DNA of 64,000 nt. Source: Macrostomum lignano (taxonomy: Eukaryota). Of this stretch, positions 8,788 to 63,083 are shown in pieces (within the stretch, counting starts at the first letter, position 1; every line of letters starts with the position of its first letter). The notes beneath the pieces were generated by a model that saw only the letters and a program-made list of their open reading frames with translations, did not search any database and was not told where the DNA came from. A program made the translations under genes and the position numbers. The stretch lies in contig NIVC01000778.1 of the NCBI GenBank assembly GCA_002269645.1, positions 1 through 64,000 of the forward strand, written 5' to 3'.

Positions 8788-11700
8788 ATGGCGTCAGTTC
8801 GATTTCTACGCAGCGCCACTAGCGTAGGAGCCATTCGCTTCGCTTGCTATCAGGCTCGCAGCTTTTGCTCCGGTGGTGGTGGACTCAGTGCCGCCGCTGC
8901 TACTGCCACTGAATCTGCCGGGTCTAGCGGTGCTTCGCTTCAACACGCCGATCAAGGCGTTGAAGCTGGCGGTATTTTAAATGCAGCCAAATATGGCGGC
9001 CGACACCACGTGTCGCTGATTCCTGGCGACGGGATCGGGCCGGAATTGATGGACTCGGTTAAAACCATAGTTAATGTAGCCGGATCGCCCATTGATTTCG
9101 AGGAGATACCGCTGTCTGCCGAGCGAGGCACAGACGAGGACATGCGCAGGGCTATACTGTCTATTAAACGAAATGGCGTGGGGCTGAAAGGAAATTTAGA
9201 AACTTTTGAAGGTAAGTTTCAATAAATTGATAGTTTAAGGCCTTAAGCTACTATTAGTAGAGTAGCATGCTTTCTAATGCGAGTGAAAAGTGAGTCAATT
9301 GATTATATAGGGTTATTGGTTCTTGTCAATTGAAATAATTAATCAGGGGTCGCCAAAATTTTTACATTGATGTGCAGATGAAGAACCTTGCTAATAATGG
9401 CCTCGGGCCAGTGGAGAGAGGAAAGAAGAAGGAATAGAGGAGAAAAGGGAAAGGAGACGAGGGATGATAGAAGAGAGGAAAGGCGAGAAAGGAGATAAAA
9501 GGAGAGATGAGATATTTGATATAAGAGAAAAGAAGGACTTTGGATAAGGATGAAAGATGAAATGAGAGAAGAGATGAGAAAGATAAAGAAAAGAGAGGAG
9601 AGAACAGAAGAAGGGCGAGAGGAGAGAAAAGCGGCCAGAGTAGAGGGGGGAGAGAGAAGATAAGAGAGCTCAAAAGAGACACAAACCCTGAGCAGGCCGA
9701 ATTGCCGTTATGAAGTTTCAAAGGACCCGGTGGCCGGAATTTGCTGACCCTTGACATAAAATGAATCATGGTTTTGCATCAACATTTACTCTTCGCTGCT
9801 TCAGTACTGCTCGTCTAACTCTGGTGTTTTATTAGCTAATGGTTTTTTGTTGCAAAGTACTTGTCGTAATTTATAATAGTAAGAGGGTAGTTAATTATTC
9901 AATAAGGCAATTAAATCTGTGTTACTTTAAATTTTACTTATCCTACAGCTAACACTGACTACACTGTTATGGGAGGTGAGTTGTTAAATGTACTTATCTT
10001 ACCAGATGCTGTTAGTTATTGCAGGCTTTGGAATTTTTTCTGTTAGTACAAAATGTTTGATACATTTATAGCAGAGGTCAGCCAGCTCCGCATGCGTAGC
10101 CTCTCTATCCGGCCCCGCTCAAGGCTTATTTGTCATCTCAGCTCTCTTCTCTTTTTTTCTTTCCTATCCTCTCATCCCCCTCTCCCCTCTCCTCTCTCCG
10201 GCTCAGACCGGATAAGCTCAGACAGTGTAGTATTGTAATAACTTCTAGACGAATTGAAGATGTTTAATTCTATTTTACATTCCATTGATAAAGATTCAAA
10301 TTTTATAAGCCTTACCGCAAAGGATAAAGTAGTTTACGTAATAACTTATCAAGATAGACGTAAAGGATATTCTAGAAAAAAATTATGACATATGACAAGC
10401 TTGAATGCTTGTCCTGAGGCTTCAGGTTAGTTGGTACCCAAAATGCTTGAGCCCCTCAGTCCTTGGACTGAACAGCCGTGTTTTGTATTTTTTCACCGCC
10501 TCATTTTATTTTCTAATCTTTTAAAATTAATTTTCGTTCTGTTAATTGTTTTGTATTGCAAATTTATATATCATTTTTAGTAATCTAAGCATTCCCCCTC
10601 CCAAGCCTTGACATCTTAGCAATTCCCCCTCCCAAGCCTTGACATCTTAGCAATTCCCCCTCCCAAGCCTTGACATCTTAGCAATTCCCCCTCCCAAGCC
10701 TTGACATCTTAGCAATTCCCCCTAAGCCTTGACATCTCAGCAATTCCCCCTCCCAAGCCTTGACATCTTAGCAAAACCCCCTCCCAAGCCTTGACATCTA
10801 AGCAATTCCCCCTCCCAAGCCTTGACATCTAAGCAATTCCCCCTCCCAAGCCTTGACATCTAAGCAACTCCCCCTCCCAAGCCTTGACATCTAAGCAATT
10901 CCCCCTCCCAAGCCTTGACATCTAAGCATTCCCTCCAAGCCTTGACATCTAAGCATTCCCTCCAAGCCTTGACATCGAAGCAATCCCCCTCCCAAGCCTT
11001 GACATCTCAGCAATCCCCCTATATGCCTTGACTTCACAACATTTAGCTCTTTAAGGTTTATTTTTAGTATATAGAAGTATGTTGAAAACACCAATTTGTA
11101 ATTGAATAATGCAATTAATTTTTTAATTAGGCATGACATCGAAGAATGTTCAGCTCCGAACTAAGCTGGACCTGTTCGCCTATGTACAGCGCTGTAAATC
11201 TATCGAAGGTGTGCCGTCTCGTTACAGCGACATTGACATACTGGTTATACGCGAGAACACGGAAGGTGAATACAGCCAATTGGAGCATTTCAACGTGCCT
11301 GGCGTTGTTGAAAGCTTTAAAATTATCACTGAAGCTAAGAGTCGACAGATTGCTAAGTTTGCCTTCGATACGGCTATTAAAACTAGGCGCCATCGCGTCA
11401 CGGCGGTGCACAAGGCCAATATTATGAAACTATCCGACGGCCTGTTCTTAGACGTCTGTCGAGATGTCGCTCGCGACTATCCTAGCATTGAGTTTAACGA
11501 TGTTATAGTTGACAATTGTTGCATGCAGCTGGTTGCTAGGCCGCAACAATTCGATATAATGGTATTGCCGAATCTCTATGGCAATATAATTGGCAATATT
11601 GCCGCCGGTTTAGTTGGCGGTCCCGGCGTAGCCGCTGGTATGAATATTGGACGTAAATACGCCGTATTCGAGGCTGGTACGAGAAATTCTGGCAGATCAA

Positions 11701-11918
11701 TCCGCGGTAAAAATATTGCTAATCCATCGGCTCTGTTGCTAACGACAGCTGATATGCTGGAGTATTTAGGCGATGCCGAGGATGCTAAAAAGCTGCGTAA
11801 TGCTGTGCTAACTGTGCTGCGTAGCGGCATTCGAACGCCGGACCTAGGCGGTTCGTCCAACACCAAGGAGGTTGTGGACGCTGTGGTGCAGTATCTACTG
11901 CAAGTTCGAGGTCATTGA
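8788..11918 (+). CDS. IDH3G: Isocitrate dehydrogenase [NAD] subunit gamma, mitochondrial
   Basis: join(8788..9211,11131..11918), phase-1 GT-AG intron. Motifs KYGGRHHVSLIPGDGIGPEL, RENTEGEYS, TAVHKANIMKLSDGLF, PNLYGNI and NIANPSA. The N-terminus resembles a mitochondrial presequence. Confidence 0.92.
9344..9753 (+). mobile_element. hAT/Charlie-like MITE with GA-rich core
   Basis: Imperfect TIRs CAGGGGTCGCCAAA and TTTGCTGACCCTTG enclose a GA-rich tract and the family motif AGAGACACAAACCYTGAGC. No clean TSD. Confidence 0.7.
10072..10200 (-). mobile_element. hAT-like MITE fragment (same family)
   Basis: CAGAGGTCAGCCAGCT end plus CCCGCTCAAGG, followed by a CT-rich tract. Confidence 0.55.
10588..11022. 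repeat. 31-bp minisatellite (about 14 copies) in IDH3G intron
   Basis: Unit AGCAATTCCCCCTCCCAAGCCTTGACATCTT, period 31. Confidence 0.97.
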
Positions 11919-62900: not shown

Positions 62901-63083
62901 GACGAAGATTCGAACCCGGTCGCCGCTAAGCGACCCCGCCGCGAGTCGCCGCCGCGCCAGCAACCGACGCTGGCCGCAACGGCAGCAGCCGACGAAGCGT
63001 CGAGCAAGGAGGACGCGGCGGTCCGCTTCTACGTTGGAGCCGGCAGCGGCGGTGACAATTCAGACGGATCTCCGATTTCTTGA
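47934..63083 (+). CDS. TAF1: Transcription initiation factor TFIID subunit 1
   Basis: join(47934..50522,56796..57533,58208..59317,59714..60036,61943..62601,62863..63083), phases consistent. TAND1 ([17 protein letters not shown]), DUF3591 continuous across intron 1 ([12 protein letters not shown]), zinc knuckle [17 protein letters not shown], two bromodomains and an acidic tail. Confidence 0.95.
50570..51130. repeat. 17-bp minisatellite (about 32 copies)
   Basis: Unit AATCCCATATCCCATTG. Confidence 0.95.
51560..51899. repeat. (GACA)n microsatellite
   Basis: About 80 tetramer units. Confidence 0.97.
51900..52190 (+). repeat. Unique-sequence block of about 290 bp, copy 1 of a direct duplication
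   Basis: AGAAGTAT...GGAGACTAG, about 96% identical by eye to 53600-53890. Confidence 0.92.
52195..53600. repeat. (GATA)n microsatellite with GACA/AATA interruptions, ending in a short (GACA)n
   Basis: About 1.4 kb of tetramer repeat. Confidence 0.98.
53600..53890 (+). repeat. Block of about 290 bp, copy 2
   Basis: Direct repeat of 51900-52190 with about 11 substitutions. Confidence 0.92.
53925..55048. repeat. (GATA)n microsatellite
   Basis: About 1.1 kb of tetramer repeat. Confidence 0.98.
55620..56695. repeat. 16-bp minisatellite (about 66 copies)
   Basis: Unit ATATCTCCGACACTTC. Confidence 0.97.
57565..58128. repeat. 21-bp minisatellite (about 27 copies)
   Basis: Unit GAGTAGATAGAGTAG(C/G)TATCT. 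Confidence 0.95.
59385..59610. repeat. (GACA)n microsatellite in TAF1 intron 3
   Basis: About 55 tetramer units. Confidence 0.96.
60062..60510. repeat. Degenerate 12-bp satellite related to 16310-17800
   Basis: GTCCTAGTGTCT units in TAF1 intron 4. Confidence 0.85.
61262..61860. repeat. 46-bp minisatellite (about 13 copies)
   Basis: CACGTG at 61299, 61345 and 61391 gives period 46. Unit GTAAGGCCACGTGACTCTCAAGGTCATAGTCTACGATAGGCAGACA. Confidence 0.95.
62613..62812. repeat. 28-bp minisatellite (about 7 copies) filling TAF1 intron 5
   Basis: Unit GCCAGCCTCCCAGATCCTCAGTTGCTGG. Confidence 0.92.

Follow-up and report, generated by a model that had tools for sequence, protein, structure and literature searches.

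A co-oriented run of twelve genes in Macrostomum lignano and the evidence for spliced-leader operons within it

Twelve consecutive protein-coding genes, all on the + strand and spanning 8788-63083, are present in a 64-kb window of Macrostomum lignano DNA (assembly Mlig_3_7, contig NIVC01000778.1, bases 1-64000). The reading that we consider most likely, at a little better than even, is a mosaic in which short operons and single genes lie side by side in one same-strand cluster of housekeeping genes that are conserved and have few introns. Some neighbours would be transcribed as short polycistronic units and resolved by spliced leader (SL) trans-splicing and polyadenylation; the likeliest units are BET1L-DUF829, USP-GFOD and WDR4-TAF1, and COMMD10-UCHL5 is a possible one. 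Own transcription units probably begin at IDH3, COMMD10 and DPP9, among others, these boundaries being predicted positions. Operon architecture of this kind is already described genome-wide for M. lignano, and on present evidence the block is an ordinary though unusually long case of it.

The flatworm setting assumed in the original prediction is appropriate: M. lignano uses SL trans-splicing, and its SL and SL RNA gene are described (PMC8629364). About 30% of its genes are trans-spliced, and SL operons with repeat-inflated spacers have been reported to comprise 15% of genes (Ustyantsev & Berezikov 2021, PMC8629364). In that study an operon is defined by a repeat-adjusted inter-transcript distance of <1 kb together with SL trans-splicing of the downstream gene (PMC8629364). 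Transcriptional units of the species are those of Wudarski et al. 2017 (PMC5730564). An Rfam scan of the 64-kb window gave no match, and thus no SL RNA gene.

The presence of 12 co-oriented + strand genes was confirmed by ORF translations, Pfam matches and annotation. In order, the genes of the run are:

8788..11918, +, gene 1, NAD-isocitrate dehydrogenase subunit (IDH3-like), Pfam Iso_dh; exons 8788(8809)-9211 and 11131-11918; annotated CDS 5′-partial, from 8809
13022..13378, +, gene 2, Bet1-like SNARE (BET1L), 118 aa, tail-anchored; annotated CDS from 13013, originally listed AG at 12987
14371..15222, +, gene 3, DUF829/TMEM53-like, one exon, Pfam DUF829 E = 3.9e-18; genomic ATG 14386
18050..18865, +, gene 4, BTB/POZ-domain protein, one exon, Pfam BTB; unannotated in GenBank
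20230..21804, +, gene 5, COMMD10-like, Pfam COMM; exons 20230-20424, 20959-21306 and 21763-21804; CDS 5′-partial, ATG 20242
23407..24492, +, gene 6, UCHL5, one exon, Pfam
26335..26802, +, gene 7, profilin-like ORF, 155 aa, unannotated in GenBank, intact in the homeolog
27810..31183, +, gene 8, DUSP-USP deubiquitinase, Pfam; exons 27810-30296 and 30653-31183
33282..35886, +, gene 9, GFO/IDH/MocA-like oxidoreductase (GFOD-like), 499 aa, Pfam; PAA76914 / Mlig012306g2
37951..43644, +, gene 10, DPP8/9, Pfam; exons 37951-38181, 38788-39360, 40019-40767, 41342-41785, 42208-42739 and 43552-43644; CDS 5′-partial, ATG 37972
45157..46479, +, gene 11, WDR4/Trm82, one exon; WDR4 is the top PDB match, E = 1e-15
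47934..63083, +, gene 12, TAF1, Pfam; exons 47934-50522, 56796-57533, 58208-59317, 59714-60036, 61943-62601 and 62863-63083; introns packed with tandem arrays

GenBank annotation covers 10 of the 12 genes under consecutive accessions (PAA76908 to PAA76917); the two without annotation, the BTB and profilin-like ORFs, are both intact in the homeolog. Exon models were matched exactly by look-up for IDH3 (PAA76908 / Mlig017458g2), COMMD10 (PAA76911 / Mlig032129g2), USP (PAA76913 / Mlig012306g1), DPP9 (PAA76915 / Mlig024592g1) and TAF1 (PAA76917 / Mlig018176g2), those of DPP9 and TAF1 having been obtained by a dynamic-programming search followed by the exact look-up against annotated proteins. The label 'BET1L' rests only on a sub-threshold Pfam SNARE match (E = 0.12), and 'profilin' only on a sub-threshold Pfam Profilin match (E = 3.6e-4) that covers the whole profile.

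As expected for members of an SL operon, the genes are adjacent on the + strand and none intervenes on the opposite strand; no credible opposite-strand or additional gene was found when the spacers of the run were searched. TAF1 closes the run, since the annotated gene that follows is convergent, on the - strand. Such an unbroken co-oriented run with a convergent gene at its end is what would be seen if the block were one polycistronic unit of ~54 kb, with a promoter just 5′ of IDH3 (about 8.0-8.8 kb), an end after TAF1 and all 11 downstream genes capped via SL trans-splicing. We regard this as improbable on the evidence below. A second alternative, which we consider possible though clearly less likely than the mosaic, is that these are independent same-strand genes, each with a promoter in its own upstream spacer and some of them monocistronic and SL trans-spliced. 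Monocistronic transcripts account for about 60% of the trans-spliced genes in M. lignano. Co-orientation of 12/12 genes in one given window, with a chance of about 1/2048, speaks against independent genes; among tens of thousands of genes, however, chance is expected to yield a few 12-gene co-oriented runs. The figure of 1/2048 put forward earlier is arithmetically correct if orientations are independent, but it is post hoc, and independence fails in an operon-bearing genome.

Stop-to-ATG distances, predicted to be 1.0-2.8 kb, measured 1007-2827 nt. Tandem arrays located by TRF, and where indicated by self-BLAST, occur 5′ of several of the genes:

8072..8655, 37/74-nt tandem array directly 5′ of IDH3 (TRF, self-BLAST)
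16281..17820, 1.5-kb tandem array with units of 12/24/84/132 nt in the DUF829-to-BTB spacer (TRF, self-BLAST)
19921..20133, 56-nt tandem array of 3.8 copies, 5′ of COMMD10 (TRF)
22124..23170, 23/236-nt tandem array between COMMD10 and UCHL5 (TRF)
25201..26259, 37-nt tandem array 5′ of the profilin-like gene (TRF, self-BLAST)
44322..45065, 34-nt tandem array 5′ of WDR4 (TRF, self-BLAST)

When repeats detectable within the window were masked, distances fell to 555-1609 nt as measured from stop to ATG and not between transcript ends, with 9 of 11 at or below about 1.06 kb. Actual inter-transcript distances are shorter than these. The prediction of repeat-inflated intercistronic spacers was right, and the phenomenon had been published previously (PMC8629364). 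In the mosaic, the kilobase-scale spacers would be made up of 3′ UTR and a short outron, together with small dispersed repeats and minisatellites in fast-evolving tandem arrays. Repeat-adjusted distances mostly near or below the published 1-kb criterion are in keeping with a single unit. Spacers of 1-2.8 kb are also roomy enough for promoters of independent genes: in M. lignano transgenes, upstream regions of 1-2 kb drive tissue-specific reporters, and <=2 kb suffices.

The strand skew of the masked spacers is consistent along the run, with T>A on the + strand in 11/11 (mean AT skew -0.11) and a value of about 0 downstream of TAF1. This consistency over the whole run is compatible with one transcription unit. 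The skew is real, yet long UTRs are equally expected to yield it, and it was discarded as an operon discriminator. How far the next acceptor lies from the last AATAAA/ATTAAA (about 100-250 nt, arrays removed) was likewise rejected as operon evidence, because the hexamers are so dense in AT-rich spacers that such distances arise by chance as well.

The homeologous contig, NIVC01000467.1, has the same gene order and strand, and there are also third copies that are partial. The conserved order in the homeolog says little, because the copies are recent subgenome duplicates with 91-97% identity. Between the homeologs the gene order is unchanged but the tandem arrays vary several-fold: the 56-nt array 5′ of COMMD10 occupies about 4.7 kb in the homeolog as against 3.8 copies here, and the 23/236-nt array between COMMD10 and UCHL5 is far shorter there. 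The BTB protein is 100% identical to that of the homeolog (5 synonymous, 0 non-synonymous differences), and the profilin-like ORF differs by 5 synonymous and 5 non-synonymous changes.

Evidence for trans-splicing and co-transcription within the block is real but partial. Every AG that had been listed upstream of the ATGs is present at its coordinate. Pyrimidine-rich acceptor-like AGs are, however, no commoner there than in random spacer sequence: 5/12 genes have a pyrimidine-rich YAG within the 150 nt before the ATG, compared with 40-44% of random 150-nt + strand spacer windows. Such chance frequency favours independent genes. The published M. lignano SL-acceptor motif, YTNCAG (PMC8629364), occurs <=100 nt upstream of the ATG in 5/12 genes against a background of 17% (nominal p = 0.04). 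Three sites near or upstream of ATGs are relevant here:

14365..14370, +, TTCCAG acceptor fitting YTNCAG, directly before the annotated DUF829 mRNA/CDS start at 14371
17968..17982, +, exact 15-nt copy of the SL 3′ end (TCAATTTATTGCATG), followed by TAAAG, 67 nt 5′ of the BTB ATG
45123, strong TTTCAG acceptor candidate of WDR4

One acceptor, that of DUF829, is supported by the annotation. The site at 14370, predicted for the TMEM53-like gene, is exactly where the annotated mRNA begins, directly after TTCCAG; the chance of YTNCAG at any given position is about 1/512. Since the mRNA/CDS starts at 14371, an SL-donated AUG would be in frame. AATAAA signals at 14242 and 14246 lie about 125 nt 5′ of this acceptor, and the stretch between is T-rich. 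That the acceptor follows the final poly(A) signals of the spacer by about 100 nt speaks against an independent DUF829 gene. For UCHL5, the only gene whose ortholog transcripts were looked at, a transcript (L004) from a related species has at its start ATTTATTGCATG, which corresponds to the 12 nt at the 3′ end of the SL; in a second ortholog contig, L003, the SL is absent. The SL-like copy near BTB, of which about 0.003 would be expected by chance in the window, is kept in the homeolog.

The annotated 5′ ends of IDH3, BET1L, COMMD10 and DPP9 have no directly preceding AG, as independent genes would predict, and those of BET1L, COMMD10 and DPP9 are not SL acceptors, which goes against a single operon. 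The acceptors proposed at 23404 (UCHL5) and 37955 (DPP9) are probably not the sites used. Annotated 5′ ends are sometimes inexact, because the DUF829 start in the homeolog is shifted 1-3 nt from the AG. A trimming artefact was looked for as a fixed offset of the IDH3 and DPP9 annotated 5′ ends from an AG, and none was consistent across genes. Exact-protein look-ups matched no M. lignano RNA-seq contigs, a homolog search with six short window proteins concatenated gave no match, and a search with the TAF1 N-terminus returned a beetle protein alone. Supplementary tables of M. lignano papers hold no per-gene trans-splicing flags for the genes of the run. One such table has an IDH3G transcript entry (2175 nt, 5′UTR_CDS_3′UTR), with no secure tie to this locus.

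The Mlig names carry one prefix per transcriptional-unit cluster. USP and GFOD have a common prefix (Mlig012306g1, g2), and in a third, paralogous copy the same holds for WDR4 and TAF1 (Mlig009081g1, g2); for most genes of the run the prefixes differ. From the common prefixes we infer co-transcription of these particular pairs. Prefix sharing is an indirect proxy and could reflect read-through or transcript-assembler merging in place of true polycistronic precursors, which is how shared unit names would be explained if the genes were independent. The common prefixes of USP/GFOD and WDR4/TAF1 tell against independent genes and lend a single unit support at some junctions. The mostly distinct prefixes favour independent genes, but RNA-seq units tend to split at repeat-rich operon spacers (PMC8629364). 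For a single operon the names are unfavourable, as they divide the block into many units. Models in UniProt in which USP and GFOD are fused depend on GTTCGA, a weak donor, and on an acceptor within the start of GFOD, and are a probable gene-prediction artefact.

With AGs at chance level, four 5′ ends without an AG and unit names that mostly differ, the original prediction of one or a few long operons across 54 kb is not shown. Its SL-operon interpretation has support in parts of the block (DUF829, the UCHL5 ortholog, USP-GFOD, the WDR4-TAF1 copy). Judged by the criterion published for M. lignano, the block would probably fall into several operons. Genome-wide, the largest operon has nine genes and 93% have two or three (PMC8629364), and a single unit is further disfavoured by the trans-splicing of just 30% of M. 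lignano genes.

Published M. lignano operons resemble the block in species, assembly, co-oriented conserved genes and the simple and dispersed repeats that inflate the spacers, as well as in the YTNCAG acceptor (DUF829) and in neighbours named from one transcriptional unit. They differ in that an operon of the 12 co-oriented genes here would exceed the reported maximum, and in that a number of the annotated 5′ ends in the block do not coincide with acceptors. The SL2-type operons of Caenorhabditis elegans have spacers of about 100 nt, 2-8 genes and a dedicated SL2. They share with the block co-oriented housekeeping genes and the layout seen between BET1L and DUF829, where a U-rich tract comes after a poly(A) signal and the acceptor lies about 100 nt further on; here, in contrast, raw spacers are 1-2.8 kb and there is a single SL, which ends in AUG. 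The directional gene clusters of kinetoplastids and dinoflagellates resemble the single-unit reading in that unrelated genes, spaced at kilobase scale, follow one another on the same strand for tens of kb. Trans-splicing there extends to essentially all mRNAs, and promoters specific to single genes are lacking. M. lignano does not conform to this type of polycistronic unit, since it trans-splices only about 30% of its genes and its gene-proximal promoters are active in transgenes.

If a single ~54-kb precursor of all twelve genes, made from one promoter near 8.7 kb and running through the tandem repeats, did exist, it would be the largest flatworm operon on record by gene number and length, arguably the largest of any animal, and would extend the size range of animal operons. 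It would mean that metazoan operons tolerate kilobase-scale, fast-evolving intercistronic spacers, and M. lignano, being amenable to transgenesis, would offer a natural setting in which to study how RNA polymerase II and SL trans-splicing cope with long, repeat-filled spacers. As a worked case, the locus illustrates that co-orientation and acceptor-like AGs by themselves cannot establish an operon.

Outside the gene run, upstream of the first gene, ORF translations identified one further element:

661..5218, -, Ty3/gypsy-type LTR retrotransposon with gag, protease, RT and integrase ORFs

Part of this element is common to the homeolog, at 96.8% identity.

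The gene set was drawn from an ORF listing, Pfam scans, a PDB sequence search and the annotated calls around four anchor proteins; window coordinates are those of the record NIVC01000778.1 (444 kb; assembly GCA_002269645.1), to which the UCHL5 ORF gave an exact protein match. The names carried by spliced proteins of the window confirm M. lignano as the species. Twelve + strand genes were found in succession in the window, from 8788 to 63083.

Predicted genes of the run (rebuilt: exon structure rebuilt and GenBank protein matched exactly)
8788-11918, +, IDH3, rebuilt
13022-13378, +, Bet1-like SNARE of 118 aa (BET1L), weak SNARE match only (E = 0.12)
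14371-15222, +, DUF829/TMEM53-like
18050-18865, +, intronless BTB protein, without GenBank annotation
20230-21804, +, COMMD10-like, rebuilt
23407-24492, +, UCHL5
26335-26802, +, profilin-like ORF, under the Pfam threshold, without GenBank annotation
27810-31183, +, DUSP-USP (USP), rebuilt
33282-35886, +, GFOD-like
37951-43644, +, DPP8/9 (DPP9), rebuilt
45157-46479, +, WDR4
47934-63083, +, TAF1, rebuilt

The rebuilt exon models of IDH3, COMMD10, USP, DPP9 and TAF1 gave the GenBank protein on exact look-up in 5/5 cases. GenBank annotation covers ten of the twelve genes, with accessions running consecutively from PAA76908 to PAA76917. No further credible gene was found on either strand in the 11 spacers of the window, which measure 1007-2827 nt from stop to ATG. 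Since twelve + strand genes are present, no gene intervenes and the spacer sizes agree, the original prediction of twelve consecutive co-oriented genes spaced by 1.0-2.8 kb is correct, as borne out by ORFs, Pfam, the PDB search and the annotated calls. The genes could nevertheless be independent units, some of them trans-spliced, a possible though rather doubtful reading: a genome of such size should hold some 12-gene co-oriented runs by chance, but with independent orientation such a run has a chance of 1/2048 in a given window.

In neither homeolog does GenBank annotate the BTB and profilin-like ORFs, which are apparently constrained. Both are intact in the homeologous contig NIVC01000467.1, where BTB differs from the window copy at five synonymous and no non-synonymous positions. 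One possible reason for the omission is that the submitted gene set dropped transcripts overlapping repeat annotations.

TRF and self-comparison detected tandem minisatellite arrays, together with a small number of dispersed elements, which account for 0-69% of each spacer. Masked stop-to-ATG distances were 555-1609 nt, 9 of 11 being at or under about 1.06 kb; only repeats found inside the window were masked, and more would be removed with a genome-wide repeat library. Distances between actual transcripts must fall below the stop-to-ATG values. The expected large, repeat-inflated spacers are thus present, and they are the published picture for M. lignano. In an analysis of the same assembly (Ustyantsev and Berezikov 2021, PMC8629364), repeats formed a substantial share of intergenic distance within operons, their subtraction gave bimodal distances between trans-spliced neighbours with a main peak near 100 bp, and RNA-seq transcriptional units tended to break at repeat-rich operon spacers.

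The spacer arrays are highly unstable, and their length shifts far faster than the flanks diverge. In the window, the 56-nt array upstream of COMMD10 (19921-20133) has 3.8 copies (210 nt). Its counterpart in the homeologous sequence L005 (2737-7481) has about 85 (about 4.7 kb), whereas the flanking sequence is 91-97% identical between homeologs. The array upstream of UCHL5 spans about 1 kb in the window versus about 0.2 kb in the homeolog. Arrays are not spacer-specific, because introns of TAF1, IDH3 and DPP9 hold them too. TAF1 intron 1 (50523-56795, 6.3 kb) is nearly all tandem repeats, with 2.85 kb of (GATA)n at 52198-55049, a 16-nt array of 1.06 kb and (AGAC)n. One dispersed element of ~290 nt, probably a MITE- or SINE-like repeat, lies in two of the spacers as well as within COMMD10, DPP9 and USP introns; a second pairs 12164-12437 with 38314-38582 (-).

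Copies of the ~290-nt element (88-95% identical)
13492-13779
21405-21680, -
37476-37758, -
40923-41113, -
30342-30432

Masked spacers show T > A on the + strand in 11/11 cases (mean AT skew -0.11), and no skew is seen downstream of TAF1. This fits largely transcribed spacers, but long UTRs predict the same skew. Poly(A)-signal hexamers are so dense in the spacers of the window that signal-to-acceptor distances are uninformative.

Pyrimidine-rich acceptor AGs had been proposed ahead of most ATGs. Each listed AG exists, but their frequency matches that of random sequence: a YAG preceded by at least 7/9 pyrimidines and at most 150 nt upstream of the ATG occurs in 5/12 genes, compared with 40-44% of 150-nt stretches drawn at random from the + strand of the spacers. 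The published spliced leader (SL) acceptor motif, [T/C]TNCAG (PMC8629364), lies at most 100 nt upstream in 5/12 genes against a background of 17% (nominal p = 0.04). Statistically, the acceptor argument contributes almost nothing.

Five annotated CDSs (DUF829, IDH3, BET1L, COMMD10 and DPP9) are 5'-partial, and the 5' end of each annotated mRNA can therefore be read from the first codon to within 2 nt. The DUF829 start (14371) directly follows TTCCAG, a perfect YTNCAG match at the proposed acceptor 14370, and an SL-donated AUG would read in frame. Upstream of it lie AATAAA at 14242 and 14246 and then a T-rich tract, and the region between BET1L and DUF829 resembles a classical short intercistronic region. 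The homeolog start is displaced by 3 nt further on, so annotated ends are not always exact. The starts of IDH3 (8809), BET1L (13013), COMMD10 (20230) and DPP9 (37951) are not preceded by AG; the annotation pipeline therefore placed no SL site there. In both homeologs the annotated IDH3 CDS starts at 8809, 21 nt past the genomic ATG at 8788. This ATG lies within CTTGCATG, a match to the final 7 nt of the SL.

For UCHL5, a homolog search yielded two short contigs of related species that look like transcripts. At the start of one stands ATTTATTGCATG, identical to the final 12 nt of the M. lignano SL, and a 5' UTR of 65 nt comes next; no SL was seen at the second. A candidate M. lignano acceptor at CATCAGTGCAG (about 23342) would leave a 64-nt UTR, and is for this reason preferred over the 23404 site first proposed.

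In the annotation, a name prefix is assigned per transcriptional-unit cluster, and SL and poly(A) evidence cuts genes out of units. USP (Mlig012306g1) and GFOD (Mlig012306g2) share a prefix in the window, as do WDR4 (Mlig009081g1) and TAF1 (Mlig009081g2) in the third copy. As a shared prefix needs a unit spanning both genes, we read these names as evidence that each pair was assembled as a polycistronic unit. A separate prefix is carried by each of IDH3, COMMD10, DPP9 and, in the homeolog, UCHL5. Older ML2-assembly UniProt models (e.g. A0A1I8JJ24; 1417-1494 aa) join USP to GFOD through a GTTCGA donor in the last USP codons (31150-31160) and an acceptor in the GFOD start codon region (33282-33288). 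They were discounted as co-transcription evidence because the donor is weak; they probably arose as an error of gene prediction, which read-through RNA may have prompted.

Operons contain 15% of M. lignano genes; 75% have two genes and 18% three, and the maximum is nine, in two operons (PMC8629364). A single 54-kb operon of twelve genes is improbable: with nine the observed maximum its prior is very low, and three internal genes (BET1L, COMMD10, DPP9) have annotated 5' ends away from acceptors. Of the original prediction of one or a few long operons, trans-splicing or co-transcription finds support at the DUF829 site and the two shared-unit pairs; these three ends stand against a single unit. 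A mosaic of short operons, somewhat more likely than not, is the best fit to the co-orientation, the DUF829 site, both pairs and the published statistics. Several two- or three-gene operons would each begin with a gene that is not trans-spliced, and single genes may lie beside them. The mechanism, species and repeat-inflated spacers are already published and the locus annotated; the block itself does not appear to be singled out in the literature, and would be noteworthy only if shown to be a single unit.

An exact 15-nt copy of the SL 3' end (TCAATTTATTGCATG), followed by donor-like TAAAG, was observed at 17968-17987, 67 nt upstream of BTB, and the homeolog has it too; chance alone would give about 0.003 such matches in the window. 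Either an SL RNA pseudogene or a trans-spliced mRNA that was retroposed could have left it behind; downstream of BTB, neither a poly(A) remnant nor a target-site duplication was seen.

The block occurs in three assembly copies, which fits the subgenomes S, L1 and L2 described for the DV1 line: the full homeolog, and partial third copies on 77.5-kb and 34.7-kb contigs with WDR4-TAF1 and GFOD-DPP9. The third copy has a WDR4 truncated to 191 aa, and in the homeolog WDR4 is without annotation. The run stops at TAF1. The next annotated gene lies ~9.6 kb downstream on the - strand, with unannotated - strand ORFs between; the coding strand reverses there (30738-35150 of L008, the sequence downstream of TAF1; record about 68.7-73.1 kb). 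The C-terminus of this annotated 274-aa protein resembles a seven-transmembrane receptor. On the 5' side of IDH3 are a tandem array and a gypsy-type retrotransposon (-), the latter running up to the contig start.

661-5218, -, gypsy-type LTR retrotransposon with separate gag, protease, RT and integrase ORFs

The portion from 4549 onward is shared with the homeolog at 96.8% identity, and the insertion is therefore older than the subgenome duplication.
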